IMG/VR virus record: IMGVR_UViG_3300009158_000031
Span: 124,001 to 188,000 of that record
Length of the DNA: 64,000 nucleotides
Direction: 5' to 3' (one strand)
The translations under genes and the position numbers were made by a program. The stretch's first letter is position 1. The number at the start of each line of letters is the position of its first letter. The notes under the pieces are model-generated. The model did no database searches. It was not told the origin of the DNA and saw nothing but the letters and a program-made list of their open reading frames with translations. Below, one piece after another: positions 4,909-34,535 of this stretch.

Positions 4909-7900
4909 ATGGCAATATCTCCTAGTCTACAACAATTCAAATCTTCAGGTGTTTACCGATTAGAATTCGACAAGAGTCAAATTACTAATATTCCATCTGA
5001 AACAATCCGTTTAATTATCGGATTCTCAAAAAAAGGACCTTTTAATACTCCTGTTCTTTGTAAAGACACCGTCTTCTTTAAAGAAATTTTTGGAGATATT
5101 GATACTTCTCTTGAAAGAAAAGGTTCGTTCTTCCATAGAACGGCTCTAGTTTCTCTTGATAGAGGTCCAGTTATTGTATTGAATCTTTTGAATCTTGACG
5201 ATACTCTAGATCAATCACAATTCCGCTCAATCTCTACTGCTTCTTGGCAAGCTAATTCAGCGGTTAAGTATGCTCCAGTATCAAATTATTTCAACCAAGA
5301 TAAATTCTGGTTCACTGATGCTCAAGCTCTTATTGACACTGCAGATAATTCTGATTATCAATCAGTTTTAGCTCAAAGATTACTTAACCTTGCAAATGTT
5401 GGTAGAAAAAACATGTCAGTTTTTACTAAAAAATCTACAACTTTAGGTTTCGATATTTTAGCTAAAGATTGGTACGGAACTGGTAAAGTTCCAGAATTCA
5501 TTAACGAAAATGATTACATCTCTGATTATATGGTAGATTTGATTATCGTTGAAGGTGACTTCTCTAATTATCAATCTCTTGCAATCGATCCAATTTATGG
5601 AACTTATTTCGATGCAACTGGTTTAAAAACTACTATCACTGATTCTTATGGAAATATTTTAGATGGTTTAACTGCATTCTTAAACTTAAATTCAGTTAAT
5701 GTACTAGGTGTTTATACTGGTTGTTTAATTCCAGAATTCCAAGATAAAAATGGTAATAACCTTTTCATTCAAGATCTAGTTAATCTAGAAACTTCTAAGA
5801 CTGGTTTGCTATTAGGAATTAATGTAGATACTATTGATGATGCTCCTGAAACTATTGGAAACGATTTAATTGACTTAATTGGTCATGGTATCGAATCTCA
5901 AGAACCTACAGTAGTAGACTTCCTTTCTTATTATGGTTCTATTGTTTCTGCAATGCCTTATGCCGGAGCTACCGGTATCGATACTCTTATCGTTGCTGGA
6001 ACTGCTGGTCAAACTGGTGCTCAGGCATTAATGATTGCTTCTGCTGGTTTAACTGGAGCTTCTGCTACAAACGGTTGGAAAACTACAACAGGTCATTATG
6101 ATACTTTATTGGTATATGGTCCTTCTGCTACTCTTCCCACTTCATTTGCATCTAAATTTGCTAACGAAACAGCATTCGCTACTTTCCGTACTGCCGTTTC
6201 AGTGGATAATACATTCATTAAAGCTGGTGCTTCAGCGAATACAACTGGTGCTTCAGGTAACTACTCTTATTTAGCTTCCGAATCTTATGATACTACAACT
6301 GATATCTTAACACTTAAGATCTCTAACGTTGCTGGTTCTGGTGTTACTGGTCCTACTTCAGTTGCTCAAGGTTATTATTACTTATACCCAGTTGGTTTAA
6401 CCGCTGGTGGTACTGCTTCATTACCGGTTATCCAATCAGTGAATTTCAATTTTGCTGAAGGTGGTAATTTGTTTACTGGTGTTGCAAATCAACTTTATCA
6501 AGATAATCTTTCTGGTATTTTAACTGATGGAGATAAAGTTAAAGTTAATAATGCAGGTGCTACTGCTACTGCTTATGCTGAATTTAACCGAGTATCTACT
6601 AATGACTTTAGTGGTGCTACATTTACTAACGCTAATGCTTTTGGTAATGAAGCTCCTATTCTAAATGCATTTACTAATTACATTGAAGTTAATGCTTATA
6701 CAAATCCTAACTTATCTACTGGAGCTACTGCAATTACTCCGCAAACTACTTATGTGGTAAATACTTTAACCGGTAATATCAACGAATCTTTCGCTCTATG
6801 GGGTGGAACTGCCTATACAAATCCTACTAACGTAGTTTGGGTAGATAATGGTTCTACTGGTCCTCTTGGATTAAATGGTTTCAATGGTCTAATCATTAAA
6901 AATCAATTATTGCTTCAGAACTTTGGCGGAACTGGTGGTGCTACATCTAACAGTCCTATTACTGGAAAATCAAGATTAACTCGCATCCTTTCAGTTGCTG
7001 AAATTACCGATCCTACATCTGATCTTTACAAAAAGATCAAGATTACTACAGTAGATCCCATCTTTATTTCTGCAACAAGTGAAATTGAAAGATATAAAGA
7101 GGCTTCTAATTTTGTTACTCACTACAGACCTTCTGCTCTTAGAGGTTATACTTTAAGAACTGGTCAAATGCCTGATGGTACTGATACTCGTCAAAATGAA
7201 ATTCTAGACGTTATGTATAACAGTAATATCGCGGCTGCTCTTGCTGATCGTGAAACTATTAGTTTCCGTTATATTATCGATTCATTCCAAGGAACAATCG
7301 AACCTTCAACGAAGATTCGTTTAACTAAACTTGCTAAGAATCGTCAATCTGCTTTAGCAATTGTCAATATGCCTTCAGTGAAACAATTTAAAGATAGTAC
7401 TAACCCTATATTCAAATTAACTTCATCTTCTCAATTCGATGCTGCTTATATTGCTGATGGTGGTAATCTATCAACAAATCCTTCAAACATATTCAGCTTA
7501 CCAGGTATTGCTGATGGTGGTAATTACTCCGCTTTCTATGGTCCTAACTTGACTATCAGAGAAGCCGGTAAAAACACTTCAGTTCCTCCTGCTGCTCATG
7601 TTGGTAACTTATACATTGACAAATACACTCAAGCCCTTCCTTATTCAATTATCGCTGGTCCTCGTAGAGGTGTGATAACAGGAACTGGTCTTGTAGGTGT
7701 TGAATACAATTTTGATAGAACCGATCTAGATTCAATTGAACCATTTGGTTACAATGCAATCGTTAACAAGAGAGGTTTTGGATTAACTATTAATGCCAAT
7801 CAAACTGCTCAACAAACTGTAAAATCTGCTCTTTCACAAATTCACGTAAGAGAGTTATTAATTTACATTCAAGATGGTATTGAGGCTATCCTTAAAAATT

Positions 7901-8160
7901 ACCGTTGGGAATTCAACAGTGCTAATAATCGTTTAGAAATTAAAACTTTAGCCGACAATTTCCTATCACAAATCCTTTCTGATGGTGGAGTTTACGACTT
8001 CCAAAACATTATGGATACAACTAACAATACGACTGAGATCATCGATAACAATTATGGAATCCTTGATACTTACATCGAACCTGTTAGAGGAATGGGTATC
8101 TTAGTTCACAGAACTACAATTCTAAGAACTGGTGCTATTTCAACTGGTAACTTTATTTAA
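4909..8160 (+). CDS. gp18: Tail sheath protein (T4 gp18-like) with a large Gly/Ala/Thr-rich central insertion
   Basis: N-terminal SGVYRLEFDKS and IIGFSKKGPFNTP; C-terminal SALSQIHVRELLIYI..WEFN and DFQNIMDTTNNT..IIDNN..IEPVRGM; 1083 aa. Confidence 0.95.
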   Translation: MAISPSLQQFKSSGVYRLEFDKSQITNIPSETIRLIIGFSKKGPFNTPVLCKDTVFFKEIFGDIDTSLERKGSFFHRTALVSLDRGPVIVLNLLNLDDTLDQSQFRSISTASWQANSAVKYAPVSNYFNQDKFWFTDAQALIDTADNSDYQSVLAQRLLNLANVGRKNMSVFTKKSTTLGFDILAKDWYGTGKVPEFINENDYISDYMVDLIIVEGDFSNYQSLAIDPIYGTYFDATGLKTTITDSYGNILDGLTAFLNLNSVNVLGVYTGCLIPEFQDKNGNNLFIQDLVNLETSKTGLLLGINVDTIDDAPETIGNDLIDLIGHGIESQEPTVVDFLSYYGSIVSAMPYAGATGIDTLIVAGTAGQTGAQALMIASAGLTGASATNGWKTTTGHYDTLLVYGPSATLPTSFASKFANETAFATFRTAVSVDNTFIKAGASANTTGASGNYSYLASESYDTTTDILTLKISNVAGSGVTGPTSVAQGYYYLYPVGLTAGGTASLPVIQSVNFNFAEGGNLFTGVANQLYQDNLSGILTDGDKVKVNNAGATATAYAEFNRVSTNDFSGATFTNANAFGNEAPILNAFTNYIEVNAYTNPNLSTGATAITPQTTYVVNTLTGNINESFALWGGTAYTNPTNVVWVDNGSTGPLGLNGFNGLIIKNQLLLQNFGGTGGATSNSPITGKSRLTRILSVAEITDPTSDLYKKIKITTVDPIFISATSEIERYKEASNFVTHYRPSALRGYTLRTGQMPDGTDTRQNEILDVMYNSNIAAALADRETISFRYIIDSFQGTIEPSTKIRLTKLAKNRQSALAIVNMPSVKQFKDSTNPIFKLTSSSQFDAAYIADGGNLSTNPSNIFSLPGIADGGNYSAFYGPNLTIREAGKNTSVPPAAHVGNLYIDKYTQALPYSIIAGPRRGVITGTGLVGVEYNFDRTDLDSIEPFGYNAIVNKRGFGLTINANQTAQQTVKSALSQIHVRELLIYIQDGIEAILKNYRWEFNSANNRLEIKTLADNFLSQILSDGGVYDFQNIMDTTNNTTEIIDNNYGILDTYIEPVRGMGILVHRTTILRTGAISTGNFI

Positions 8161-8172
8161 TATTTGAATGAA

Positions 8173-8196
8173 GCTGGGATTCGCAAGGATCCCAGC
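8173..8196 (+). other. GNRA-capped hairpin between sheath and tube genes (mRNA stabiliser/processing site or weak terminator)
   Basis: gctgggattc-GCAA-ggatcccagc: 10-bp stem with one G.U pair, no U-tract. Confidence 0.55.
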
Positions 8197-8254
8197 CAAT
8201 TCATTTACGAATCAGTAAGATAAATAATAAAATACACAAAAAAAGCAATATACA

Positions 8255-8809
8255 ATGCCAGGATTACCACATTTTCTAAACAGTAAAGCGGCTACTAAAT
8301 ACTACGAACCGTTTTATCAAAACTTGTTTGAGGTAAACATTCTTCCTCCTTCTACTATTTCTGGTGGAGAGATCTTGATTGAACACGTAAATAAAATCGG
8401 CGGTTTAACTCAAGATAGAGGTTCAGAAGCAACCACTCAATCATACAAATTCGCTAAGAGATCTTACGCAATGGGAACTCCTACAGATACCATTACAGAT
8501 TTAACAATCGGTTTCTCTCTTAACTTAAACGATGCAAACGAACTATACGTATATAAAACATTACGTGATTGGTTCCGTTTGATCTATAACCCACTTACTG
8601 GTGAACAAGGTTTGAAGAAAGATTATGTAGGTACTCTCGTTATTACAAACTATAATCGTGCCGGAGATATCTTCTGGCAACGTACTTTCCATGATTGTTT
8701 CCCTACTGGAGATATCGGTGAATTAGCTGCAGATTACTCAGGTGGTGAAAAAGTTGATATGCCAGACGTTAAATTTCGTTCTGATTGGTGGGAAGAGAAC
8801 ATCGTTTAA
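8255..8809 (+). CDS. gp19: Tail tube protein (T4 gp19-like)
   Basis: YKTLRDWFRLIYNPLTG..YVGTLVITNYNRAGDIFWQRTFHDCFP; 184 aa directly after the sheath. Confidence 0.9.
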   Translation: MPGLPHFLNSKAATKYYEPFYQNLFEVNILPPSTISGGEILIEHVNKIGGLTQDRGSEATTQSYKFAKRSYAMGTPTDTITDLTIGFSLNLNDANELYVYKTLRDWFRLIYNPLTGEQGLKKDYVGTLVITNYNRAGDIFWQRTFHDCFPTGDIGELAADYSGGEKVDMPDVKFRSDWWEENIV

Positions 8810-22937: not shown

Positions 22938-24296
22938 ATGAAAGTAGCTGAACAGAAATCAAAATCGGTAACTGAATATCTGGATACCGAATATTTAAGT
23001 TATGCCAAGTATGTGGTGGAAAATCGTGCAATACCTTCGGTTATTGATGGATTCAAACCAACACAAAGAAAAATCATTTTTACTGCAAATCGAGCATGGA
23101 AGAATGGAACTGAAAAACCTTTTAAGATTTTTCAATTGAGCGGTAAAGTTGCAGTTGAATCTTTTTATCATCATGGTAATGCATCACTTGATGCTGCAAT
23201 TATTGGTATGGCACAATCATTTAAGAATTCACTTCCGCTCCTTGAAGAGATTGGTCAATTTGGATCTTTGCGATCTCCTGAAGCCGGTGCTCCTCGTTAT
23301 ATCTCAACTAAATTATCTAAAAATTTCAGATTGATTTATAAAGACTTCGAATTACTTACTCCTCGAATGGAAGAAGGAAATGAAATTGAACCTGAATATT
23401 TCTTACCAATTATACCTACTGTTTTATTAAATGGATCTTCCGGTATTGCAGTTGGATTTGCCACTAACATTCTTAACCGAAATCCAATTGATTTAATCGA
23501 TGCTTGTCTTGCGATTGTTAATGGAAAGAAATTTAAAGAACCTTTACCATGGTGGAGAGACTTTAACGGTAACGTTGAAAAAGTCGATGGCAGTGCATCA
23601 TCATTTGTATTTCGTGGAATCTATGATGTAAAAGATACTACAACCGTAGAAATCACAGAACTTCCACCTTCAATGACTCTTGAGAAATATGATAATATTC
23701 TTAATGGTTTATTGGAAAAAGGAATCATTCGTCATTATGATGATAATTGTTCAAATGGAATTAGCTATACCGTAAAAATTGGTAGAGCAGAAATGAAACA
23801 ACATGAACCTCGTCTTGAAGGTTATTTAAAATTAGCCGAAGCCGAAACAGAAAATCTAACTTGTTTAGATGAACGTGGTAAGCTAATCATTTTCAAAAAC
23901 GTAAATGAAATTATCAATTACTTTGTAAACTTCCGTCTAAGTTATTATGACAAACGAAAACAATATTACGTTGATCTATATACCCGAGACCTAACTAGAT
24001 TATCAAATCGAGCTAGATTTATTAAAATGGTTGTTGATAGCAAACTAAAAATTAATAACGTTCCTAAAGCACAAATCGAAGCTGAATTAATAAAGAATAA
24101 ATTCGATCAGCTAGATGGATCGTTTACTTACTTACTTTCAATGCCTATTCATTCATTAACGAAAGAAAAAATCGATGAATTGCTTAAAGATGTTGAAACC
24201 AAAAAATCTGAAATCGAAGAAATTCAAAAGTTAACTAAGGAAGAATGGTATAAACAAGACCTTATGGCTCTTAAAAAATCATTACAAACCAAATAA
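22938..24296 (+). CDS. gp52: DNA topoisomerase II medium subunit (T4 gp52/GyrA-like)
   Basis: RAIPSVIDGFKPTQRKI, FYHHGNAS, GQFGSLRSPEAGAPRYI (active Tyr), LLNGSSGIAVGFATNI. Confidence 0.96.
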   Translation: MKVAEQKSKSVTEYLDTEYLSYAKYVVENRAIPSVIDGFKPTQRKIIFTANRAWKNGTEKPFKIFQLSGKVAVESFYHHGNASLDAAIIGMAQSFKNSLPLLEEIGQFGSLRSPEAGAPRYISTKLSKNFRLIYKDFELLTPRMEEGNEIEPEYFLPIIPTVLLNGSSGIAVGFATNILNRNPIDLIDACLAIVNGKKFKEPLPWWRDFNGNVEKVDGSASSFVFRGIYDVKDTTTVEITELPPSMTLEKYDNILNGLLEKGIIRHYDDNCSNGISYTVKIGRAEMKQHEPRLEGYLKLAEAETENLTCLDERGKLIIFKNVNEIINYFVNFRLSYYDKRKQYYVDLYTRDLTRLSNRARFIKMVVDSKLKINNVPKAQIEAELIKNKFDQLDGSFTYLLSMPIHSLTKEKIDELLKDVETKKSEIEEIQKLTKEEWYKQDLMALKKSLQTK

Positions 24297-24783: not shown

Positions 24784-25026
24784 ATGAAAGAGAACAAAGA
24801 TAGAAAATACCAAGTTCTACTCTCTCCTTCGGATGACCATAAATTAAAGAACATTATCATCAATTACTCATCGGTGAAAGGTCAATTAATGACGGCATCA
24901 GCTTATATTCGAGATATGATTAACAATCATATAAGAGAATATGAAGGAGAACAAAATTCGTTTGTGAATGAACGAGTTAAAGAAATTATTCAAACAACAA
25001 AACAAAATTCAAAAAACGAAAATTAA
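24784..25026 (+). CDS. Ribbon-helix-helix-like DNA-binding protein
   Basis: KYQVLLS strand, DDHKLKNI helix, TASAYIRDMINNHI helix (CopG/MetJ-like pattern). Confidence 0.5.
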   Translation: MKENKDRKYQVLLSPSDDHKLKNIIINYSSVKGQLMTASAYIRDMINNHIREYEGEQNSFVNERVKEIIQTTKQNSKNEN

Positions 25027-25029
25027 AAA

Positions 25030-25992
25030 ATGGAAAACAAAAATAATTATGAGGCAGGGATGAATGATTTAGAGAATCGTGAATTTCGCCAAGAAACGAA
25101 AATTGAAGAACAGGAAGTAAAACCTACTTCATTGGGTAAAGCTAGAGATTATACTGATCGTGGATCAGATGAAGCGGCTTTATTACCAGGTTATCATGAA
25201 ATCTATGCAGAGCAATTCCCATCAAAAGGAATTTTTTATCCAGAAGGAACTCGCTTTATGATTCGTGCAGCACAAGTAAAAGAGATTCGTCATTTCTCTA
25301 CAATCGACGAACAAAATCCCTTTTCGGTAGATGAAGCCTTAAATGAAATTCTTAATGGATGTATGCAAATTCGTGTACCTGGCCGTCAAGCATCTTTTAA
25401 AGATCTTAAAGAAGAAGATCGTATATTCATAATCATGGCTATTCGTGAATTAACTTTCCTTAAAGGTGAAAATCGTCTAATGTTAAGTGTAACTTGCAAA
25501 GAGTGTAGTACTGATAATGAACTTGATATTCGTAATGATGCATTTGAATCTACTAAATTAGAAGATACCATTATGAAATATTACGATCCAGAATCTCGTA
25601 TATTTGATGTACAAACTAAATCATCAGGTAATATTAAAATCTCTCCACCATCAATTGGTATCATGAGAGAAATTACTAAATATATTCAAAAGACTCAACA
25701 AGAAGGAAAGAAAATCGATCAATCATTCGTTAAGGTTCTTCCTTACATGATTCAAGAATGGAGAGGATTTACTGAAGCATCCATTAAAAATATGGAAGTT
25801 GAATTTATGCGTTGGGATACTACTAAATATCAAACAATGAGTAAATTAACTGAAATGACTCGAATAGGGGTAAAAGAAGAGCTAAGTCATAATTGCTCAA
25901 AGTGCGGTACGGAGTTGCGCACTCCCATTAGCTTTCCCGGCGGTATCAAAAGTCTTTTCGTTATTTCAGATATCTCTGGAGAACTTATTTAA
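25030..25992 (+). CDS. Baseplate hub/tail assembly chaperone (T4 gp26-like)
   Basis: PSKG..FMIRAAQVKEI, DRIFIIMAIRELT, CKEC and CSKCG zinc pairs, IKISPPSIG; precedes the tape measure gene. Confidence 0.72.
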   Translation: MENKNNYEAGMNDLENREFRQETKIEEQEVKPTSLGKARDYTDRGSDEAALLPGYHEIYAEQFPSKGIFYPEGTRFMIRAAQVKEIRHFSTIDEQNPFSVDEALNEILNGCMQIRVPGRQASFKDLKEEDRIFIIMAIRELTFLKGENRLMLSVTCKECSTDNELDIRNDAFESTKLEDTIMKYYDPESRIFDVQTKSSGNIKISPPSIGIMREITKYIQKTQQEGKKIDQSFVKVLPYMIQEWRGFTEASIKNMEVEFMRWDTTKYQTMSKLTEMTRIGVKEELSHNCSKCGTELRTPISFPGGIKSLFVISDISGELI

Positions 25993-26257
25993 GACTAAAA
26001 CTTATTTACTTTATCATCTACGACTACAGCCTTCAGAAATTGAAGGCATGTCGTATTATGAGTACGAATATATCACACAGAACTTGATAGATATATTAAA
26101 GGAGAAACAAGATGCCGAAGAACGTTCTCATAAAGGACAATCTGATAGTATGAATGTTAATTCCATGATGAAAGACGCTAAAAAGAGTTTACCTTCAATG
26201 CCTAGCATGGGTTCACTATCATCTTTCCCTGGAATTCCCTCCTCATTAAAAATATAA
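25886..26257 (+). CDS. T4 gp51-like/lambda gpT-like chaperone extension; open frame lacking a good start, probably reached by frameshift
   Basis: The +1 frame relative to 25030 is open from 25886 to 26257 and reads LFQISLENLFKTKTYLLYHLRLQPSEIEGMSYYEYEYITQNL. The first ATG (26048) falls in the middle of the gp51-like motif. Confidence 0.6.
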   Translation, partial: VIIAQSAVRSCALPLAFPAVSKVFSLFQISLENLFKTKTYLLYHLRLQPSEIEGMSYYEYEYITQNLIDILKEKQDAEERSHKGQSDSMNVNSMMKDAKKSLPSMPSMGSLSSFPGIPSSLKI

Positions 26258-26264
26258 TTTGTAA

Positions 26265-29200
26265 TTGAGCGCTAGACAAGTAAATGCACAAGAAGCAATT
26301 GTTTCCATCACTAGCAAGATGGAAGCGATGCTTCAGCAAGTGCAAACCCAATATGATCAGTCAATTAATTTATTAACGTCATTAAATACAACAATGACGG
26401 TTGATGTTGGGCAGGAGCTTAAGAAGCAAACCTCCTTACTTATGTCCATTGAGGCTAAGATAGGAACCAATGGAGGTAGTGCTGGCGAAGATAAAATGTT
26501 AGGCAAGAATTTAGAAATTCTCTCTAAAGGATTGAGTAAACTTGTTAAAGCGGCTGAAAAAATTAAACCTAAAACTGGCGAACAAGTAAAAGAATTTTTA
26601 GGTAATATAGCTGATGGTCTAGCTAGTTTAACTGATAAAATAGATGAAAAGAAAGCTGAAATTATAGCGAATACGGTTATAACTTTAGCAAAAGGTGTTC
26701 TTCTATTTGGATTAGCAATGACTCTATATGTAATACTCGGACCAACCGCAATGTTAGGTTCAATGCTATTTGGATTAACAATTAGACTCTTATTGAAATC
26801 TGCCGGAGAAGTAGATGAAAATTCGCTTAAAGGAATTGTTGCAGTTGCTGCATTAGGTCTTGGTGTTATATATTTTGGATTAGCAATGGCTTTATATGCA
26901 GTTATTGGTATTCCTGCAATGCTAGGTGCTGTTTTATTTGGATTAACCGTTAGATTATTAGCTAAAACTGCCGGATTAAATGATCCTAAAGTTGCTGCTG
27001 GAATTGTCGGAATTGCTGCATTAGGTCTTGGAGCCATATATTTTGGATTAGCAATGTTGGGTTATGCAATTATCGGTATTCCAGCAATGCTAGGTGCTGT
27101 TTTATTTGGATTAACCGTTAGATTATTAGTGAAAACAGCTGGTTTAAACGATCCTAAAGTTGCTGCCGGAATGCAAGCCTTAATAGGACTTGGTAAAGCT
27201 ATTTTAATATTCGGTTTAGTTATGTTGGCTTATGCAATTATTGGTATTCCTGGATTGATTGGTGCTTTGGTTCTTGCATTAACTCTTAAACTTCTTTCGA
27301 AAAGTATTAAGTCAATGGGATCTAATATGGTCAGAAAAGGAATTATAAATATGGCTTTAGGAGCTATTGCTATTATTCTTCTCGGATTAACTATTATATT
27401 ATTTGCAAAAGAGGTTCCTATAATGAGTTCTCTTTATGTTATTCTTACCATTGGTGCATTTGCTTTAGCCTTCTATATAGTAGGTAAATTCTTTAATGAT
27501 ATATTAAAAGGAGCTCTTGCAGTTGCTGCTATAGGATTAGGTATATCATTCTTAGCCTTAGGTTTATTCTTTTATAAATCAGTTGGAATGACTTGGGAAG
27601 AAACCGCAATGTTAGGGGTTACTATCGCTGGTCTTGGATTAGTAATGGGAGGTGCTGGTGAATTCTTTATGGAAATTATTAAAGGATCCGCTGCAATGAT
27701 AGTCGCCGGAATTGCTCTAATAGTTATTTCTGCGGGTTTACTTGTATTCGCTCAAACTAAATTAACATTTCAAGATGCTGCTATTCTAGGAGCTACCATC
27801 TTAGGACTTGGTGTTGTAATGGGAATTGCCGGTGCTGGACCGGTACCTTTATTTATTGCATTAGGATCTGCCGCAATGATTGTTGCTGGTTTATCTTTAG
27901 TAGTTCTTTCTCTTGGTCTTGGAGCATTCAAGCTAACCGGATTTAAAGTTGAAGATGCTTTATCTTTAGGAGCTGCTATAGGTGCAGTTGGTGTAACTAT
28001 GGGTATTGCCGGATTAGCCTCTCCATTTATTATATTAGGTAGTGCAGCAATGGCTATTGCCGGTGTTGCATTAATGCCTCTTGCATTAGGATTGGCCGTA
28101 TTCAAAGCTATTGGTTGGAAAAAAGGAACCGATGATGAGAGTTTAAAATCTGCATTAGGTTCCGTAATATCTGGTTTTCTTGGAGGAGATATGCCTGGTG
28201 GTATTCTTGCATCAATTAAATTTGCTGCTCAAGCGGCAGCTAGATCGGTTCTTCTATTCATAGCAATTCCGCCATTAATTCTTGCCGGTGTTGCTTTATT
28301 GTCTATCTCTTTAGGATTAGCCGCATTTAAGAAAGCCGGATTTACTTCTTCGGATTCTGCTAATATGGAAGCTGCTATTGGTGGTATCGTTGGAGCATTC
28401 TCATTAGTTACTGATAAAGAACGTCAGAAGAAAATGGGAATCAATGTCGATTGGATGGATTTAATGATTGGTATTATGGCACTTTCACAAGCCGGAAATA
28501 CTCTATCTTCATTAGCAAAAGGAATTCAAGCATTTGCTAATCTTTCAGTTATTGAATATGAGGTGGTTGGTGCTGGAACTAAAAATGCTAAAATCGTTCC
28601 TAAAGGAATTACCAAATTAAGCAAGTCCGATTTTGAATCAGCGGCTTATGGAATGGCACAAGTAATTGGGGCTATTGCCGAACCATTCGCTTTAGTTGGT
28701 AAATTAGAAAAGGGTACACCATCTGGAAATCCTTTCTATGATGCAATATTCGGTGGTGGATTTGTATCTGCCGGTATTGATGCATTATCAAGATCTGGAG
28801 ATACTCTTGTTAATTTAGCAAAAGGAGTACAAGCATTCGCTAATCTCGAAATAACTGAATATGAAGTAATTGGTGCTGGAACTAAAAATGCTAAAATAAT
28901 TCCTAAATCGATTACGAAAATGTCGCCGACAGATTTTGCTGCTGCCGGAGCCAATATAGCAAAAATTATTGCGGTTGTTGCCGAAGCATTCGCTAAAGTA
29001 GGTAAAGATGAAGCTGCATCTGAAGGAGTATTCTCTGGAGGATTCTTATCTAAAGGAGTCGAAGCATTAGCTAACATAGGAGAAAATCTACAAGGAATTA
29101 CTGAATCGGTTATTAAAGTTGCAACAGGAACATTTACTCCAATGACTGCCGTTCAAGACGGAAAAGGTACTAAATTAGTACCTGGAACTCCTATTAAAAT

Positions 29201-30005
29201 TTCTAAGGCAATGTTAGAAGAGGCTGCCAGAACAATTAATAGTGTTATAATGGTTCTAGGACAGGGAATGATGGACTTCGGAACATTCGTTGACGAGAAT
29301 GAAGATTCTATCGACGAAGCTATTGAATACATTCCTACAATGAGTGAAGCCTTAATGAAGATGGTAGAGGTTAATGAAAAATTCTCTAAGATAACAGATG
29401 CAGATAAAGGAGTTAAATCATTTACTAGTTTTAATCAAGCAGTAATGGATGCTTATGATCCAGCCAAGCAGAAAAATCTTCCTCAAACAGCAGGATATAT
29501 GATGCTATTCGTTAAAGGTATTGAAAGACTTGCTGCACCGGCCGATCAATTAGGTAAGGTTGCATCTAACGTAGAACGTATAGAAGCAGCAATGAAAAAT
29601 ATCAAAACTCATGTTAATGGATTTGATATGGAAAGGCTTACTAAAACGGATTCTCTATTTAAGTCAATGGCGATTTTATCAAAGAATCCTGAAGCTATGG
29701 CTGCTAAAATTAATGATACTCTTAAAGTTGCATTTGAAGAATTTGGTAAAGCTCTTACCGAAGCAATTAAAGAATCCGGTGGTGGTGGTGGCGGTGGCGG
29801 TGGTGGAATACTTGAAGGCGTTAAAGATATTTTGACTCCAGGTCCAGCAGGTGCTGCTCCAAAAGCTACCGATCCAAAAGGAAAGGCTGCTCCTGGACCT
29901 GCTCCTCTCACTGCAGAGGCGATTGGAGCTGCTATGTCGAAAGCTTTAAATGCCGCTTCAATTACCATAAAACCGGCAGCAAACGCGGTATTCAAAACCA
30001 CCTAA
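26265..30005 (+). CDS. Tape measure protein
   Basis: 1246 aa, Gly/Ala/Leu-rich amphipathic repeats (56-aa period near 26850-27200, about 100-aa period near 28520/28820); follows the chaperone genes; TTG start uncertain. Confidence 0.8.
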   Translation: MSARQVNAQEAIVSITSKMEAMLQQVQTQYDQSINLLTSLNTTMTVDVGQELKKQTSLLMSIEAKIGTNGGSAGEDKMLGKNLEILSKGLSKLVKAAEKIKPKTGEQVKEFLGNIADGLASLTDKIDEKKAEIIANTVITLAKGVLLFGLAMTLYVILGPTAMLGSMLFGLTIRLLLKSAGEVDENSLKGIVAVAALGLGVIYFGLAMALYAVIGIPAMLGAVLFGLTVRLLAKTAGLNDPKVAAGIVGIAALGLGAIYFGLAMLGYAIIGIPAMLGAVLFGLTVRLLVKTAGLNDPKVAAGMQALIGLGKAILIFGLVMLAYAIIGIPGLIGALVLALTLKLLSKSIKSMGSNMVRKGIINMALGAIAIILLGLTIILFAKEVPIMSSLYVILTIGAFALAFYIVGKFFNDILKGALAVAAIGLGISFLALGLFFYKSVGMTWEETAMLGVTIAGLGLVMGGAGEFFMEIIKGSAAMIVAGIALIVISAGLLVFAQTKLTFQDAAILGATILGLGVVMGIAGAGPVPLFIALGSAAMIVAGLSLVVLSLGLGAFKLTGFKVEDALSLGAAIGAVGVTMGIAGLASPFIILGSAAMAIAGVALMPLALGLAVFKAIGWKKGTDDESLKSALGSVISGFLGGDMPGGILASIKFAAQAAARSVLLFIAIPPLILAGVALLSISLGLAAFKKAGFTSSDSANMEAAIGGIVGAFSLVTDKERQKKMGINVDWMDLMIGIMALSQAGNTLSSLAKGIQAFANLSVIEYEVVGAGTKNAKIVPKGITKLSKSDFESAAYGMAQVIGAIAEPFALVGKLEKGTPSGNPFYDAIFGGGFVSAGIDALSRSGDTLVNLAKGVQAFANLEITEYEVIGAGTKNAKIIPKSITKMSPTDFAAAGANIAKIIAVVAEAFAKVGKDEAASEGVFSGGFLSKGVEALANIGENLQGITESVIKVATGTFTPMTAVQDGKGTKLVPGTPIKISKAMLEEAARTINSVIMVLGQGMMDFGTFVDENEDSIDEAIEYIPTMSEALMKMVEVNEKFSKITDADKGVKSFTSFNQAVMDAYDPAKQKNLPQTAGYMMLFVKGIERLAAPADQLGKVASNVERIEAAMKNIKTHVNGFDMERLTKTDSLFKSMAILSKNPEAMAAKINDTLKVAFEEFGKALTEAIKESGGGGGGGGGGILEGVKDILTPGPAGAAPKATDPKGKAAPGPAPLTAEAIGAAMSKALNAASITIKPAANAVFKTT

Positions 30006-30023: not shown

Positions 30024-30770
30024 ATGGCTAAAAGAAGAAAGAATTATCAAGAGGAAGAACAAGATTACCAAGAGGTAATCAATCATTTCCAACCAAATCA
30101 ACCCATTCTTGAAAAATACAAAATTGAGTTAAAACCTAAAAGCGAAAATCAAAAGATTTTTTTAGACTTAATAAGTAATAAGGAAATTGTAATATGTTCG
30201 GGTCCAGCTGGTACAGGTAAAACTTTCTTAGCTTGCGTTCAAGCACTTAAATTATTCAAATCCGAATTTAAGTATCGTAAAATCGTATTAGTAAAATCCG
30301 TTACAACTCTTAAGGATGAAGAGATTGGTTATCTTAAAGGAACTATGGAAGAAAAAATGGAACCTTTCGTTTATTCATTCTTTCACAACTTCGAGAAAAT
30401 CCTTCCCAAGAATGTTATTAAAAATTTAAAAGACTCTCAATCAATTGAAGTTCTTCCTCTTGCATATATGCGAGGAATTAATCTAGATAATTGTATTGTA
30501 ATTGTCGATGAATGTCAAAATATTACACCTGATAATATGAGAACTATTATGACTCGTATAGGTGAAAATTGTAAGATGATATTCTTAGGTGATGAAGGTC
30601 AAATCGATTTGAAAAATAAGAAAAACTCTTCTTTACAGCTAATCATGGATAAATTCTCAACGGTTCCAGCAATTGGATGTATTAGATTCACCGAAGAAGA
30701 TACGGTTAGAAATCCATTAATCAGAAAAATAGAAGAAGTTTTTAGATCTATTTCTAATCCTACTGCATAA
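30024..30770 (+). CDS. phoH: PhoH-family ATPase
   Basis: GPAGTGKT, IGYLKGTMEEKMEP, PLAYMRG, IVDECQN, LGDEGQID, VRNPLI. Confidence 0.95.
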   Translation: MAKRRKNYQEEEQDYQEVINHFQPNQPILEKYKIELKPKSENQKIFLDLISNKEIVICSGPAGTGKTFLACVQALKLFKSEFKYRKIVLVKSVTTLKDEEIGYLKGTMEEKMEPFVYSFFHNFEKILPKNVIKNLKDSQSIEVLPLAYMRGINLDNCIVIVDECQNITPDNMRTIMTRIGENCKMIFLGDEGQIDLKNKKNSSLQLIMDKFSTVPAIGCIRFTEEDTVRNPLIRKIEEVFRSISNPTA

Positions 30771-30777
30771 AATAGGT

Positions 30778-31299
30778 ATGAAAAGAAAAAAGCCAAATGT
30801 CTTCTTAATATCCGATACTTTCTTTGGTAGAAATTTAGCTGCCGTTGAAAGAGGATTTGAGAGTGTAGAAGAGATGGAAGATAACATGATTGATTTATGG
30901 AATGAAACCGTCGGTGAAGATGATGTAGTATATCATTTAGGTAATTTTGCATGGGATCCTATTTCAGCAGAAACGGCAATCAATTTTCTGAAAGGTAAAA
31001 TTTATTTCGTATCCGGTAAATGTGATACCTTTCTACCGACCATATCTTTAGTTAAAACTGGAGTTCATACTTTATTTACCAATCAGATTGGAACTATGAA
31101 AGATCACAATTTTATATTTTCTCATTGGCCTATGTTAGATTGGCCTGGAAAAGAAAATGGATTTATGCAATTTCATGCCGGAGAAGAACCAACAAATATT
31201 AAAGAACAACGAATCAATGTCAATTGTAAGAATTGGGGTTTAAAACCAGTTGCCCTAGATGCTATACTTGATATTATTGAAATAACAAATAAAAAATAA
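30778..31299 (+). CDS. Calcineurin-like phosphoesterase homologue with degenerate metal ligands
   Basis: FLISDTFFG, YHLGNF, VSGKCD, FSHWP, FHAG replace canonical SDxH, HLGD, GNHD, SHYP and HGH. Confidence 0.7.
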   Translation: MKRKKPNVFLISDTFFGRNLAAVERGFESVEEMEDNMIDLWNETVGEDDVVYHLGNFAWDPISAETAINFLKGKIYFVSGKCDTFLPTISLVKTGVHTLFTNQIGTMKDHNFIFSHWPMLDWPGKENGFMQFHAGEEPTNIKEQRINVNCKNWGLKPVALDAILDIIEITNKK

Positions 31300-31377
31300 A
31301 CATAGAGCCTCACTCTTGTTTGTCTTGGGTTTAATCACCCTAGAGTAGTCTAATCGGCTACAATAAGATTAACAAAC
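31298..31377 (+). ncRNA. Candidate structured 5' leader: left arm of a long-range inverted repeat plus a three-way junction with two UAAUC loops
   Basis: P1 ttgtttgtctt/aagattaacaa; P2 gggt-ttaatc-accc; P3 gtagtc-taatc-ggctac. Confidence 0.45.
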
Positions 31378-31394
31378 TAAAAACAAAGGTAAAA

Positions 31395-32171
31395 ATGTAC
31401 ACAACAACCACAACAGAAAAAGCTTGCGAAGCTCATATCGCTATTAATCACAGCCGTCTAAAGAGCTATGATAAAAATCGCTACTATCTTAAAGATAAAA
31501 CAAATTTCGAGATAGAGGTATTCAATCCACATACCGTTTCGGTATTAGCAAAAATCAAAATGAATGGTGAGTATATCTCAACTGCCGGATTGATTATTAA
31601 ACCAGGTCAACGAGTATTTCTTTCTCGTTATCTAGACACAAACAATTCCTTCCTTTTCGAAACATATGATGTTGAGAATAATCATGAAGTACTTGAAGCA
31701 ATTGCCAACAATGGTAAAATTGAAGTTGAATTCTTCTTAGAACAGAATTATTATAATCCTACTTTTAGTGGAATATCGTGGACTTCATCGCCAACGGTTT
31801 ATTATCAAAACAACTTCCATAATGGAAATATGTTGTTCGATTCACAACCCATCTTTGGAGGAATTGCCTCTACCTTCACATCATCTCTTAATATGCCTAT
31901 TGCCGGTAGTTCAGATGTAAAATCTCTTTCGGTAGATGCATCAATAGAAACGGGAAGAATTGAGAAAGGTGAAAAGACTAATCAAAAAATGGAATCATCT
32001 TATGGATCTTATAATTCATGGCCAACGAACGCCATTCAAATTCAGCTATTCCCGGAATCAATCAAACCAATTGAGGTTTCTGAAATTCGTACATATTGTA
32101 CTGAATGTGGAACTCGAATGAAAAAACAAACATGGAAATTCTGCCCTAATTGCGGAACTAAAAATGACTAA
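31395..32171 (+). CDS. Conserved phage protein with C-terminal double zinc ribbon
   Basis: Beta-rich N-domain (FEIEVFNP..KIKMNG..KPGQRVFL); C-terminal YCTECG..KFCPNCG. Confidence 0.7.
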   Translation: MYTTTTTEKACEAHIAINHSRLKSYDKNRYYLKDKTNFEIEVFNPHTVSVLAKIKMNGEYISTAGLIIKPGQRVFLSRYLDTNNSFLFETYDVENNHEVLEAIANNGKIEVEFFLEQNYYNPTFSGISWTSSPTVYYQNNFHNGNMLFDSQPIFGGIASTFTSSLNMPIAGSSDVKSLSVDASIETGRIEKGEKTNQKMESSYGSYNSWPTNAIQIQLFPESIKPIEVSEIRTYCTECGTRMKKQTWKFCPNCGTKND

Positions 32172-32199
32172 TTAGAGAGTGAGGCCTCTATGTTTTAAT

Positions 32200-32256
32200 T
32201 TGTTAATAACTTTATTCAAATAAATTTTTTTATTCCACAAAAAAGTATTATATTTG
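32200..32256 (+). promoter_or_regulatory. Composite early promoter, copy 4
   Basis: TTGTTAATAACTT at 32200; TATATTTG at 32249. Confidence 0.8.
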
Positions 32257-32282
32257 TATATACAATTTAAAACAATATACAT

Positions 32283-32483
32283 ATGACAATGACTAAATTA
32301 GACTACAACAAAATCTCAAACGTATTCGTAGGTGGAATCGATATGGAAGATTTTCCAGATTTCTGTGACGCTTACATCGAATCTGCTGATTATGATAATC
32401 GTGAAATGACCGACGAAGAATTAGATATTCTTAACGAAGACGGTAGCTTTATTTCCGAACACGCACATTCACAAATTTGTTAA
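32283..32483 (+). CDS. Small acidic early protein
   Basis: IDMEDFPDFCDAYIESADYDNREMTDEELD; very acidic, possible DNA mimic. Confidence 0.6.
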   Translation: MTMTKLDYNKISNVFVGGIDMEDFPDFCDAYIESADYDNREMTDEELDILNEDGSFISEHAHSQIC

Positions 32484-32484
32484 T

Positions 32485-32646
32485 ATGATAATTTACATGA
32501 TACAAACTCTTCAGATGTTCGTAAACATAAGAGGAGAAGAATTCGCAAAACGAATTTCAGAATGTGGAAGATTCCAACAAACTAAAGATGGAGTTCCATT
32601 TTTAATAATTGAAGACGAAGATAAACTTAATACTCTACTAAATTAA
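32485..32646 (+). CDS. Small hypothetical protein (53 aa, not in track)
   Basis: MIIYMIQTLQMFVNIRGEEFAKRISECG..; tightly packed between neighbours. Confidence 0.45.
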   Translation: MIIYMIQTLQMFVNIRGEEFAKRISECGRFQQTKDGVPFLIIEDEDKLNTLLN

Positions 32647-32647
32647 T

Positions 32648-32809
32648 ATGGAAGATAAAGAGATAATCATAAAAGCAATCGCTCAAAGAATCAAAGATGA
32701 GCAAAAGAAACATGAACGAAGTATTCCAGATTGGCATGAAATTGCTGCACGAAAAATATATGCTTCATTAGATATTAAACCTAAAACAGATTCAGATGAA
32801 AACTTATGA
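32648..32809 (+). CDS. Small hypothetical protein (53 aa, not in track)
   Basis: MEDKEIIIKAIAQRIKDEQKKHERSIPDWHEIAARKIY..; tightly packed. Confidence 0.5.
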   Translation: MEDKEIIIKAIAQRIKDEQKKHERSIPDWHEIAARKIYASLDIKPKTDSDENL

Positions 32810-33023
32810 ACCAACCGATTCTATGCGAACGAATCAACTATCATTTACTCCAGGAGGATCTACTATAAAGGTTCTATATGAAACTCATGAAGTGGTATAC
32901 ACAAAAGTAAAATATCCAAATGCATATATTAGGAAAATTCTAACCGATGCTCAACCTGAAGCAATTTGGATAAACGATCAATTAACACACATAAAAAAAG
33001 ATGGGACGATTACGAAACTTTAA
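32796..33023 (+). CDS. Hypothetical protein
   Basis: 75-aa ORF in operon. Confidence 0.55.
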   Translation: MKTYEPTDSMRTNQLSFTPGGSTIKVLYETHEVVYTKVKYPNAYIRKILTDAQPEAIWINDQLTHIKKDGTITKL

Positions 33024-33492
33024 TAAATTAAAATGGAAACCTTTTCAATTGAGAGAGGGTTCAATTTCCATAACTAATTACTTTATCGATAAAGATGGAA
33101 AGAAATGTCCAATGCAATCACATTTAGATATTCCCAAATATTCATTCTTTGAGATTGTAAAATGGGAACCTAATCAATATTATGGTAAGCTTCAAGAATA
33201 TTTAGATAATGGATGGAACATATCATTTGGCGGAGATTTCCTTCAACGGAATAATACCTCTATTTCTCTATCATTCTTTACCGGATCTCCTGAATCTTGT
33301 TTCATGCTTGCCTCATGGGAAAACATGGATCATGATGAAAAATCTCCTGACCTTAAATTTGTAGGATCTCGTCCAATGGATTTAAATGAAGAAGAACAGG
33401 CAATTTTCATGCAGATTGCAAAAGCCGGTCAACAACATATAGAAAAGGTATTAAGCAAATTCAACGAAGAAGATCACGATCATTGGAATTAA
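33001..33492 (+). CDS. Hypothetical protein
   Basis: 163-aa ORF in operon. Confidence 0.55.
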   Translation: MGRLRNFNKLKWKPFQLREGSISITNYFIDKDGKKCPMQSHLDIPKYSFFEIVKWEPNQYYGKLQEYLDNGWNISFGGDFLQRNNTSISLSFFTGSPESCFMLASWENMDHDEKSPDLKFVGSRPMDLNEEEQAIFMQIAKAGQQHIEKVLSKFNEEDHDHWN

Positions 33493-33493
33493 A

Positions 33494-33550
33494 TTGTTAA
33501 TAACTTTTGAAACAAATATTTTTTTATTCCAAAAAGATTTATTATATTTG
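33494..33550 (+). promoter_or_regulatory. Composite early promoter, copy 5
   Basis: TTGTTAATAACTT at 33494; TATATTTG at 33543. Confidence 0.8.
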
Positions 33551-33576
33551 TATATACAATTTAAAACAATATACAT

Positions 33577-33846
33577 ATGACACACAGAGAATTCCATTTA
33601 AACGTAACAAAAGCAATTACCGAAAACTCCGGTAGAGAAGTTTATCCCATAATATACAAAGTTGGTGATACTTTAACACTTAACGAAAAACAATTCGATG
33701 ATCTTCAATCTGGTTCTACTATCACTTTTTATACTAACGAAGGAATCATGGAATTTGACAAATATAATTTTAATAATGAAGTTTCCTTCACAGAAATAAC
33801 CGTTCAATCCGGAACTCGCAAATTAGGTCAACGTAAAAAGAAATAA
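33577..33846 (+). CDS. Hypothetical early protein
   Basis: 89-aa ORF after promoter 5. Confidence 0.6.
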   Translation: MTHREFHLNVTKAITENSGREVYPIIYKVGDTLTLNEKQFDDLQSGSTITFYTNEGIMEFDKYNFNNEVSFTEITVQSGTRKLGQRKKK

Positions 33847-33847
33847 T

Positions 33848-33912
33848 TTGTTAATAACTTTCCATCAATAAATTTTACTTTACCAATTTTTTTTATTATA
33901 TTATACTATAAA
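33848..33912 (+). promoter_or_regulatory. Composite promoter, copy 6 (variant -7: TATATTAT-ACTATAAT)
   Basis: TTGTTAATAACTT at 33848; TATATTAT at 33897 (49 bp later). Confidence 0.7.
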
Positions 33913-33935
33913 TAATAACTTAAACAAATCAACTT

Positions 33936-34535
33936 ATGGCTAAAAACGAATCATTAAAGGAATTAGGCGTTTCATTTAAAGAAACCAGATCAGAACGAGT
34001 ATTTACCGATTTGTATCATCGACTTAAACCAGGATTAACAAATTATGTCTTTCAAATTGTAAAAGATTACGATATGTCTAATCATATTGTTTCGGCGGTA
34101 ATGTCTGAGGTTTACAATAAAATCGATAAATATGATCCCAAATGGCATATATCAACGTGGATTTATCGAATAGCATACACTCATGCTTGTGGTTATCTTC
34201 GTGCTAAAAAAGTACAAAGAACGGTTTCCCTTTCTGCATTCGATAACGATGAAAATCGTAACCGTTTACATAAACTTGAATTTGAATCTATCGAAGATCA
34301 TCGTGATGCAATCGAAAAACGTGAGGATGCTGATGCGGAAAAAGCACACATTTTATACCTTCGTACAATCGTCGATAATTTACCAATCGAATATCGTGAG
34401 GTAGTAGTTGAAAAATTCTATAACGATTTAAAATACGATGAAATCGCCGAGAAACTAAATATTCCATTACATACCGTAAAAAATCGAATTTCTCGAGGAA
34501 AACGAATCATTCAAGAAGAACTTACCAAAAAATAA
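33936..34535 (+). CDS. ECF-type RNA polymerase sigma-70 factor
   Basis: Region 2 (VYNKIDKYDPKWHISTWIYRIAYT); region 4 HTH (LPIEYREVVVEKFYNDLKYDEIAEKLNIPLHTVKNRISRGK). Confidence 0.92.
   Translation: MAKNESLKELGVSFKETRSERVFTDLYHRLKPGLTNYVFQIVKDYDMSNHIVSAVMSEVYNKIDKYDPKWHISTWIYRIAYTHACGYLRAKKVQRTVSLSAFDNDENRNRLHKLEFESIEDHRDAIEKREDADAEKAHILYLRTIVDNLPIEYREVVVEKFYNDLKYDEIAEKLNIPLHTVKNRISRGKRIIQEELTKK

Follow-up and report, generated by a model that had tools for sequence, protein, structure and literature searches.

In the long-tailed phages, the tail assembly chaperones G and GT of phage lambda are a case of a conserved frameshift, in which two products share an N-terminus, the ribosome probably shifts a few codons before the end of the upstream ORF, and the gene sits directly before the tape measure gene (Xu, Hendrix and Duda 2004, cited in PMC9024508). 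T4-type phages seemed to lack this otherwise near-universal tail-chaperone frameshift. In phage T4, gp26 and gp51 are encoded by two separate, divergently transcribed genes with no recoding, and their roles, listed only as "hub assembly chaperones" (PMC3004832) and "essential protein of unknown function", have stayed vague. The two proteins are paralogues sharing the whole T4_baseplate domain, with gp26 (residues 1-206) and gp51 (residues 1-201) both spanning the Pfam family, while the gp51-specific C-terminal tail corresponds to phrog_634 (baseplate hub assembly catalyst), T4 gp51 residues 147-246 aligning to profile positions 2-103.

Here, we analyzed a 64,000-nucleotide stretch (hereafter the window) of a 254-kb freshwater phage record, IMG/VR IMGVR_UViG_3300009158_000031, positions 124,001 to 188,000. 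Comparative evidence indicates that this phage very probably makes a short, gp26-like and a long, gp51-like form of its chaperone from one gene, by slipping of the ribosome into the +1 frame at a short run of U's, although this rests on sequence comparison without protein, ribosome-profiling or reporter data. The features of the locus are as follows.

25030..25992 (+), gp26-like gene of the T4_baseplate family, 320 aa, the unshifted product, ending in a conserved E-L-(L/I) tail
25177..25479 (+), N-terminal domain (residues 50-150) with a predicted tail-assembly-chaperone-like fold
25953..25959 (+), proposed shift site T CTT TTC, read ..S-L-F.. in frame 0 and ..V-F-S.. in the +1 frame
25958..25989 (+), dual-coding overlap, encoding the VISDISGELI tail in frame 0 and SLFQISLENLF in the +1 frame
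25958..26257 (+), +1-frame extension of 99 codons plus TAA, a gp51-type tail
25970..25978 (+), ATA (25970) and CTG (25976), proposed as alternative non-canonical starts and read here as internal Ile and Leu codons
26265..30005 (+), large downstream tape-measure-like ORF, 1246 aa from TTG 26265 (ESM Atlas entry from residue 19, ATG 26319)

The sequence anatomy of the original prediction, which had proposed a +1 or -2 shift joining a gp26-like chaperone to a gp51-like extension, is correct in every statement. The upstream ORF ends ...GGIKSLFVISDISGELI-TAA, and the +1 frame is open from 25886, after TAA 25883-25885, to TAA 26255-26257 (123 codons), its first ATG/GTG/TTG being ATG 26048. The sequence agt CTT TTC gtt lies at 25951-25962, with CTT-T at 25954-25957, and a shift at this site gives a product of 408 aa (+1 model) or 409 aa (-2 model). 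Independent assemblies agree, and an RNA-library contig (25882-26031) is identical with no indel.

The 320-aa protein belongs to Pfam T4_baseplate (PF12322), scoring 28.5 bits against a cut-off of 24.5, with residues 75-295 aligned to profile positions 15-206, and it matches phrog_36717 at 8.7e-34; in a search of its own genome it scored 27.8 bits and was the only T4_baseplate match in the 254-kb record. The AF2 model (pLDDT 81, pTM 0.75) has as BFVD matches PAU gp93 and T4-like baseplate hub/assembly proteins. The N-domain's best PDB matches are tail assembly chaperones, the HK97 chaperone 2ob9 and YqbN, although Foldseek against the PDB gave nothing significant for the whole protein or the domain. 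The protein further carries a split Cys4 zinc ribbon, with C156, C159, C289 and C292 invariant in one alignment (A2) and residues about 150-300 aligning with zinc fingers in the structure search; another alignment (A1) was too divergent for a locus search.

The +1 extension is homologous to the gp51-specific tail. The window's peptide hits phrog_634 at E 0.015 in the PHROG scan and E 0.00115 in the own-genome search, where it is the only phrog_634 match, and 24 of 45 diverse homologous peptides hit the same profile, best E 2.6e-7. Some of these matches cover profile positions from 47-60 to 115-119. However, the link to T4 gp51 runs through phrog_634; an HMM built from the 131 extension peptides and searched against T4 ORFs gave no hit to gp51. 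BLASTP against T4 gp51 of a fusion modelled with the shift placed five codons upstream was not significant, and a PHROG scan of that fusion added nothing beyond the separate parts. The downstream ORF is considered tape-measure-like from its position, size, repeated hydrophobic segments and a Gly run; an Atlas match to T4_Tape_measure PF25671 (0.85) is a lead only, and Pfam and PHROGs gave no significant hit.

Notably, this arrangement is far more than chance. All 12 loci first examined have the downstream ORF in the +1 frame, and among 132 distinct homologous junctions from GenBank phages and IMG/VR contigs, 131 have a +1 ORF running at least 40 codons (at least 52 observed) beyond the gp26-like stop, all overlapping the upstream gene by at least 59 nt. 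The one exception is a Lak-B phage whose +1 ORF is cut by a TAG, a codon that is probably recoded in that group. In the window's clade (67 junctions), codon periodicity switches from frame 0 to +1 exactly at CTT-TTC. The last frame-0-type variable third position is that of CTT (H 1.06), and the first +1-type variable third position is G25960 (H 1.27). Upstream, entropy is 0.82, 0.82 and 1.37 at frame-0 positions 1, 2 and 3, whereas in the overlap (-30..-10) it is 0.92, 0.38 and 0.26, respectively. Environmental contigs from relatives pile up only on about 25930-25990.

The +1 peptide is under purifying selection at the amino-acid level. From the site onward, the +1 residues (S-L-F-Q/K-I-S-L) are invariant or nearly so, with synonymous third positions: S64/L3 (TCG31 TCA29 TCC4), L67 (TTA35 TTG32), F67 (TTT35 TTC32), I67 (ATA53 ATC14), S66 and L63. 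Meanwhile, the overlapping frame-0 residues vary (V/I/L, I/V, S/Q/P/H, I/L, S/A/T/D) and their third positions are fixed; upstream +1 codons are not conserved, and frame-0 GGN is free. At the site itself, T25953 is invariant although its codon varies (S/A/D/G), the Leu codon is CTT52 CTC5 CTG4 TTA3 CTA1 TTC1 ATT1, and Phe is TTC64/TTT3; 14 of 67 junctions lack the full U-run. Furthermore, 22 of 67 junctions have no ATG/GTG/TTG at or upstream of the first conserved +1 codon, and 11 of 67 have none in the whole overlap. In two of the homologous loci, L019 and L021, a +1 stop lies 59 nt before the frame-0 stop, with no near-cognate start between it and the FSL motif.

We therefore propose, with good confidence, that one gene gives two tail-assembly chaperone proteins by programmed ribosomal frameshifting. 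In this model, most ribosomes read 25030-25992 and release the 320-aa protein, comprising a chaperone-like N-domain, the split Cys4 zinc ribbon, a helical domain and a conserved ELL-type tail, while a fraction change into the +1 frame on T CTT TTC and read on to 26257, adding the 99-residue gp51-type tail. The direction of the shift is unresolved, and we slightly favor a backward -2 tandem slip, in which peptidyl-tRNA-Leu moves from CUU to xUC and tRNA-Phe from UUC to UUU, giving ...KSLF-SLFQ... (tryptic junction peptide SLFSLFQISLENLFK), over a forward +1 slip of tRNA-Leu from CUU to UUU, giving ...KSL-SLFQ... (SLSLFQISLENLFK). In line with this preference, all 10 junctions whose Leu codon is CTC/CTG/CTA have C before the invariant T (CTCTN, allowing Leu re-pairing at -2), against 29 of 52 with CTT (Fisher p 0.0096, not corrected for phylogeny). 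By analogy with lambda G/GT and with T4 gp26/gp51, the shared part would hold the tape measure protein encoded immediately downstream, and the extension would couple it to tube or hub assembly.

Some features of the site fit this model less readily. It is not a canonical heptamer, its A-site codon is an ordinary Phe codon with no stop or known hungry codon, and no conserved stimulator was found. A hairpin after the site in the window (-6.5 kcal/mol) breaks in about 40% of relatives, and alifold gives no consensus; GGAGG 10 nt upstream is not conserved; and Rfam finds no frameshift element, a sub-threshold "freshwater-2" hit at 26051-26114 (27.9 bits against 49.9) not being found in 15 relatives. 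Phage pT24 and the Lak phages have no U-run at the aligned position. Other shift mechanisms were considered and rejected: a +1 slip on the A-run (AAA-A, 25948-25951), because the Lys codon is AAG/AGG/AGA/TCA in relatives; transcriptional slippage, because four T's are too few and the RNA-library contig is collinear, although contigs cannot exclude rare variants; and a -1 shift, because the +2 frame closes within a few codons of the stop in many relatives and shows no conservation.

The main competing reading, which we consider unlikely, is that the gp51-like peptide is a separate small protein started inside the overlap at ATA 25970 or CTG 25976, or at ATG 26048, by coupled or internal initiation. 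Indeed, GenBank relatives annotate separate small ORFs (PAU gp94, PTm1 ORF-023, pT24 131 and MA9V-1 007), S-PM2 gp51 has an ATG, and T4 gene 26 itself probably uses an internal AUU start. The column aligned with ATA is ATG in 55 of 57 junctions of the LR745206-like clade, GTG in PTm1 and TTG in pT24, so independent initiation in other clades cannot be excluded. However, a conserved ATG at this ISLEN position, which the original prediction had named as one observation that would refute a shift, occurs only in that one other clade, where the upstream +1 codons and the U-run are conserved too, so the column behaves as a hydrophobic I/M/V/L residue rather than a start. In the window's clade the column is never ATG, although one frame-0-conservative change would make it so, and the +1 codons upstream of it (S, L, F, Q/K) show a coding-type pattern of synonymous variation. 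Some phrog_634 matches start at or next to the FSL motif, upstream of that column, a start at 26048 would drop about 30 conserved residues, and in T4 the homologous tail is covalently attached to a T4_baseplate domain.

Less likely still is a prfB-like +1 slip at the stop codon itself, with the last sense codon ATT/CTT followed by TAA (25987-25992) and the whole 320-aa protein extended from AAG 25991 onward. Curiously, 55 of 67 junctions end CTT-TAA, the same CUU-U-plus-stop arrangement as prfB (CUU UGA), and Lak phages, which lack the upstream U-run, end TTT-TAA, which allows perfect +1 re-pairing. Nonetheless, this reading leaves the amino-acid-level conservation of the +1 frame inside the overlap unexplained; the residues SLFQISLENLF align with the cyanophage gp51 residues SMFYNNLENYY and with T4 gp51 FTFYQIN..., so they must be translated, and they lie before the stop. 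The window itself has ATT-TAA, a poorer slip codon. Finally, overlap conservation can partly come from the other frame, but that the +1 ORF is an unexpressed chance frame or a shadow of frame-0 or RNA-level constraint is only a remote possibility, since 88 of its codons lie beyond the frame-0 stop, are conserved with +1 periodicity (entropy 1.48 at +1 third positions) and match a curated phage family.

The wider inference of the original prediction, that gp26 and gp51 form a G/GT-type pair, gains support from these data. In a broader and more speculative view, about as likely as not, the T4 superfamily has an ancient G/GT-like recoding site that has gone unrecognized because T4 itself split it into genes 26 and 51. 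At one homologous U-run, cyanophages would shift -1 on U UUU UUC, while the large freshwater, marine and gut phages whose cultured relatives infect mostly Bacteroidota (this window, PAU, PTm1, LR7565xx and probably the Lak phages) would shift into the +1 frame, most likely by a natural bacterial -2 tandem slip with no obvious stimulator, and gp26/gp51 would be the tape-measure chaperones of T4-type tails. Literature searches, in an incomplete library, found no description of a gp26/gp51 frameshift. Such a model would correct many annotations, since at least 800 IMG/VR loci encode relatives of the window-type genes and 566 GenBank records match S-PM2 gp51, calling a truncated small ORF or nothing at this position. 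It would also offer a natural series of homologous sites differing in direction (-1 versus +1/-2) for studying slippage on U-runs, including in hosts with weak Shine-Dalgarno use.

Compared with lambda G/GT, the frame change here is net +1 rather than -1, without an X_XXY_YYZ heptamer, and the protein is much larger, with the zinc ribbon and helical domain after the chaperone-like domain and no detectable sequence similarity. The tape-measure-like ORF starts 8 nt after the extension's stop; however, in this window the gene does not follow a tail tube gene, being preceded by a topoisomerase subunit and small ORFs, while in PAU, MA9V-1 and pT24 it follows the sheath gene after two to four unnamed ORFs. 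As in the +1 frameshift of prfB (RF2) and, probably, the +1 shifts in structural genes of Listeria phage PSA (reference listed in PMC9024508), the net change is +1 in a bacterial or phage gene and CUU-U is a possible slip codon, but here there is no stop or known slow codon in the A site at 25957 and no SD-like element 3 nt upstream, where the bases are aaa agt. With -2 frameshifts, such as the predicted Mu-type chaperone shift and what appears to be the arterivirus site G GUU UUU, the locus shares a U-run on which the A-site tRNA-Phe can re-pair two bases back, and the conserved T before the Leu codon fits P-site re-pairing, although no trans-acting or downstream stimulator was identified.

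The T4-like cyanophages, for example S-PM2 (p207/p208), have homologous genes in the same order, with a U-run at the homologous codons and the extension out of frame. All 59 distinct cyanophage junctions have TTTTTTC in X_XXY_YYZ register, with the gp51 ORF in the -1 frame, and 21 of 59 have no canonical start; their canonical heptamer T TTT TTC lies three codons before the stop, while the window has T CTT TTC eleven codons before the stop and the extension in the +1 frame. With T4 itself, the locus shares the Pfam family of the common part and the PHROG of the gp51 tail, and its unshifted C-terminus (G-I/L-K-x-x-F...ELL) resembles the end of gp26, such that the unshifted form resembles gp26 and the shifted form gp51. 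Neither gp51 (PMC3004832) nor a lambda-type chaperone is a virion component. Gp26 would correspond to lambda G and gp51 to GT, with T4 encoding as two separate genes the two forms that one gene appears to give here.

The window lies within a 254,393-bp virus record, and the sequencing runs that hold it are freshwater metagenomes. The original prediction placed a programmed +1 (or -2) frameshift at a CTT-T site joining a gp26-like gene to a gp51-like extension lacking a start codon, and every sequence statement on which it rested is correct. The features concerned are as follows:

24784-25026: an 80-aa ORF directly upstream of the gp26-like gene, with a weak match to a transcriptional regulator family (phrog_639, E 0.025)
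25030-25992, frame 1: an ORF of 320 aa (gp26-like) ending ...GGIKSLFVISDISGELI-TAA
25886-26257, +1 frame: an open frame of 123 codons running to the TAA at 26255-26257
25951-25962: the bases agt CTT TTC gtt
25970: ATA in the +1 frame
25976: CTG in the +1 frame
26048: ATG, before which the open +1 frame has no ATG, GTG or TTG
26265-30005: a tape-measure-like ORF of 1246 aa

The 320-aa protein passes the Pfam gathering score for T4_baseplate (28.5 against 24.5 bits) and hits phrog_150 "baseplate hub", while the +1 peptide hits phrog_634, "baseplate hub assembly catalyst", which is the gp51 family. The latter match has an E value of 0.015 on residues 24-81 and profile positions 56-115, and in a search of the phage's own genome the same stretch gives E 0.00115. 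T4 gp26 (208 aa) and gp51 (249 aa) both span T4_baseplate end to end, at residues 1-206 and 1-201, respectively, and gp51 residues 147-246 match phrog_634 positions 2-103. So the profile segment matched by the window's extension corresponds to the roughly 48-residue tail that gp51 has and gp26 lacks, which in T4 is covalently attached just after the T4_baseplate domain, although this link to T4 gp51 runs through a family profile and not through a direct match. The unshifted product therefore has the gp26 architecture, and a shifted product would have the gp51 architecture. Notably, the 254-kb record (CheckV completeness 83%) holds only one T4_baseplate match and one phrog_634 match.

A tblastn search found the gene in 31 phage records, including the LR7565xx and LR745206 huge phages, Lak megaphages, Sphingomonas phage PAU, Tenacibaculum phages PTm1, PTm5 and pT24, and Chryseobacterium phages MA9V-1 and MA9V-2. 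In all 12 loci first examined, the next ORF is in the +1 frame, and that frame is open at least 59 nt upstream of the gp26-like stop. Two scans of IMG/VR found more than 800 loci that encode relatives (504 and 324), of which the best 80 each were kept, and from 181 loci we obtained 132 distinct junctions. Of these, 131 keep a +1 ORF of at least 52 codons beyond the stop, and all overlap by at least 59 nt; the exception is a Lak-B phage whose +1 ORF is interrupted by TAG, a codon that is probably recoded in that group. GenBank records annotate only a short ORF from the first internal Met or TTG, as a separate hypothetical protein. The extensions also share an ending, since after a polar low-complexity linker (window 26200-26254 and the ends of the aligned extension ORFs) they finish in a conserved short motif (M/I)-P-(K/S)-x-(K)-(I/L/F), for example ..GIPSSLKI, ..SMPKL or ..RMPKMKKFW, which may be a docking peptide.

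The window's clade comprises 67 distinct junctions, in which the +1 codons starting at TCG 25958 are conserved at the amino acid level. Over the same bases, the frame-0 residues vary (V/I/L, I/V, S/Q/P/H, I/L, S/A/T/D, G/S/D) and their third positions are fixed. Upstream, the picture is reversed, with frame-0 Gly using all four codons and the +1 "residues" being unconserved.

Table. Residues and codons of the +1 frame from TCG 25958 in the 67 junctions of the window's clade.
Codon 0: S64 L3; TCG31 TCA29 TCC4
Codon 1: L67; TTA35 TTG32
Codon 2: F67; TTT35 TTC32
Codon 3: Q/K
Codon 4: I67; ATA53 ATC14
Codon 5: S66; TCT/TCG/TCA
Codon 6: L63

The mean per-site entropy by frame-0 codon position confirms the switch. 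The last frame-0-type variable site is the third base of CTT, and the first +1-type variable site is G25960, so that the switch lies on CTT-TTC, the site named in the original prediction.

Table. Mean per-site entropy at frame-0 codon positions 1, 2 and 3, by region relative to the stop.
Upstream (-99..-40): 0.82, 0.82, 1.37
Overlap (-30..-10): 0.92, 0.38, 0.26
Downstream (+3..+119): 1.48, 1.03, 0.55

The last three frame-0 residues (E-L-L/I) are also conserved and recur at the end of T4 gp26, such that the overlap appears to be truly dual-coding. T4 gp26 (gene 26, at 7803-8429 of the T4 locus) ends ..RGLKEFFELL, and the unshifted product of the window's clade (window 25939-25992) ends ..GGIKSLF......ELL/ELI. 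The ELL tail is conserved across very distant phages, so the short form's own C-terminus is probably functional.

Assembly artefacts do not account for this arrangement, as independent assemblies from different metagenomes are identical or keep the frames. A contig from a metatranscriptomic library covers 25882-26031 with no difference and no indel, although such libraries can contain DNA and contigs hide rare variants. Besides, in all four environmental runs, extra contigs from other phages match only about 25930-25990 and run on into unlike sequence on both sides, and the depth peaks there (for example, 45 against 4-8). This roughly 60-nt island of conservation across many co-occurring phages is an independent sign of the nucleotide-level conservation of the dual-coding stretch.

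An internal start is the principal alternative to a frameshift, but the conserved +1 codons S, L, F and Q/K lie upstream of the ATA column, which is ATA or ATC and never ATG in the 67 junctions. Of these, 22 have no canonical start at or upstream of the first conserved +1 codon, and 11 have none anywhere in the overlap, while the TTG seen in 32 of 67 is a synonymous variant of a Leu codon that is TTA in the other 35. In two of the homologous loci (L019 and L021), a +1 stop lies only 59 nt before the frame-0 stop, with no near-cognate start between it and the FSL motif. Curiously, in the LR745206-like clade the aligned column is ATG in 55 of 57 junctions, and it is GTG in PTm1 and TTG in pT24, so that an additional internal start in those clades cannot be excluded. 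The LR745206-like clade also keeps T ATT TTC in 56 of 57 junctions (one has C for the first T), as well as the upstream +1 residues V-F-S-L-F, and we therefore read the column as a hydrophobic residue. However, 14 of 67 junctions lack the full U-run, and pT24 and the Lak phages lack it altogether. In Prevotella phages Lak-C1 and Lak-B5 (L005:3760-3800 and L006:3689-3844, two of the homologous loci), the gp26-like ORF ends with TTT-TAA, a possible shifty stop with perfect +1 re-pairing, and Lak phages may shift at the stop instead. Their +1 ORF has a roughly 45-residue insertion, and in Lak-B5 it contains an in-frame TAG, in keeping with the likely recoding of TAG in that group.

Both possible directions of the shift decode TCG 25958-25960 as the first new-frame codon. 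In the +1 model, tRNA-Leu slips from CUU to UUU, with no stop or slow codon in the A site and no SD-like element 3 nt upstream. In the -2 model, tRNA-Phe moves from UUC to UUU and tRNA-Leu from CUU to xUC, which explains why the base before the Leu codon (T25953) is invariant although that codon encodes S, A, D or G. It also explains why all 10 junctions whose Leu codon is CTC, CTG or CTA have C before that T, giving CTCTN and Leu re-pairing at -2, compared with 29 of 52 junctions with CTT (Fisher p 0.0096, not corrected for relatedness). The -2 model further keeps the family on backward slips, like the site found in cyanophages, and we favor it only slightly. No conserved stimulatory structure was found, and a sub-threshold Rfam hit to the "freshwater-2" RNA motif inside the extension ORF (26051-26114; 27.9 bits against 49.9, E 0.037) was not found in 15 related loci and is probably due to chance.

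The AF2 model of the 320-aa protein is confident (pLDDT 81, pTM 0.75). Foldseek finds nothing significant in the PDB, whereas in BFVD it finds PAU gp93 and many "baseplate hub" or "hub assembly" proteins of myoviruses. Several of these structural relatives are 370-475 aa long (for example, Ralstonia phage phiRSL1, 384 aa, and Achromobacter phage Motura, 438 aa) and may be naturally fused, gp51-like long forms in other jumbo phages. Residues 50-150 folded alone reach pLDDT 88, and their best matches were sought among 48,161 PDB representatives.

Table. Best PDB matches of the predicted fold of residues 50-150, in rank order.
1: 2ob9, HK97 tail assembly chaperone; 6.2; 77 of 104
2: 3fgx, uncharacterized protein; 5.8; 84 of 96
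3: 3klu, YqbN of B. subtilis; 5.8; 84 of 119
4: 5ir0, ORF19 of a Vibrio PICI-like element; 4.6; 83 of 103
5: 9ubw, an unrelated channel protein; 4.3; 75 of 149
6 onward: 3.1 or less

YqbN is probably the chaperone-position gene of a B. subtilis prophage, and Foldseek also ranks 2ob9 first, but at E 0.78, so that the likeness to tail assembly chaperones is suggestive rather than proven. The gene lies 8 nt upstream of the 1246-aa ORF, whose nearest named cluster in the ESM Atlas is T4_Tape_measure at a score of 0.85, which is a lead only. This ORF, which the Atlas holds only from residue 19 (ATG 26319), has at least four repeats of a hydrophobic module of about 45 residues and a run of nine Gly near the C-terminus. 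The chaperone and tape-measure cassette is isolated from other tail genes in the window, being flanked upstream by a topoisomerase II subunit (judged by its sequence) with small ORFs (22938-24296), and downstream by PhoH, a phosphoesterase and a sigma-factor-like gene (30024-34535). In PAU, MA9V-1 and pT24, it follows the tail sheath gene, with two to four unnamed ORFs between them.

Taken together, the observation is confirmed and its interpretation as a frameshift is supported, on comparative evidence and without evidence at the protein level. Frameshifting in tail chaperone genes is already known, whereas the net +1 frame change in a T4_baseplate-family gene is what differs here, with a wider implication for T4 gp26/gp51 and for cyanophage annotation; we found no published description of it, although the literature searched was incomplete. 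Reviews call gp26 and gp51 hub assembly chaperones (PMC3004832; PMC9024508), and one GenBank record, that of Acinetobacter phage Berthold, already names gp51 "tape measure protein assembly chaperone".

In T4-like cyanophages, the homologous site is a canonical heptamer. A search with phrog_634 located gp51 of Synechococcus phage S-PM2 (L185:2640-2864, the S-PM2 locus; NC_006820 about 151140-151363), where gp26 ends ...LEGLQSFFA-TAA, encoded as ...cag tcT TTT TTC gca TAA, and the 57-aa gp51 lies in the -1 frame. T TTT TTC is a textbook X_XXY_YYZ site, located three codons before the gp26 stop, and GGAGG lies 10 nt upstream in S-PM2. After a -1 slip, the frame reads FFRISMFYNNLENYYRT..., which aligns with the window's SLFQISLENLFKT. 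Among 59 distinct junctions from cyanophage-type IMG/VR contigs (loci L186-L265), all carry TTTTTTC in that register and all have the extension in the -1 frame, while the column holding the S-PM2 ATG is ATG32 CTC17 TTG6 CTA2 CTG2. Importantly, 21 of the 59 have no canonical start at all, and nine have a -1-frame stop directly before the heptamer. GenBank records name a small "baseplate hub assembly catalyst" ORF, or nothing where no start exists. This looks like an unannotated programmed -1 frameshift. A homologous recoding site used in different directions is what Xu, Hendrix and Duda (2004; cited in PMC9024508) described for tail chaperone genes.
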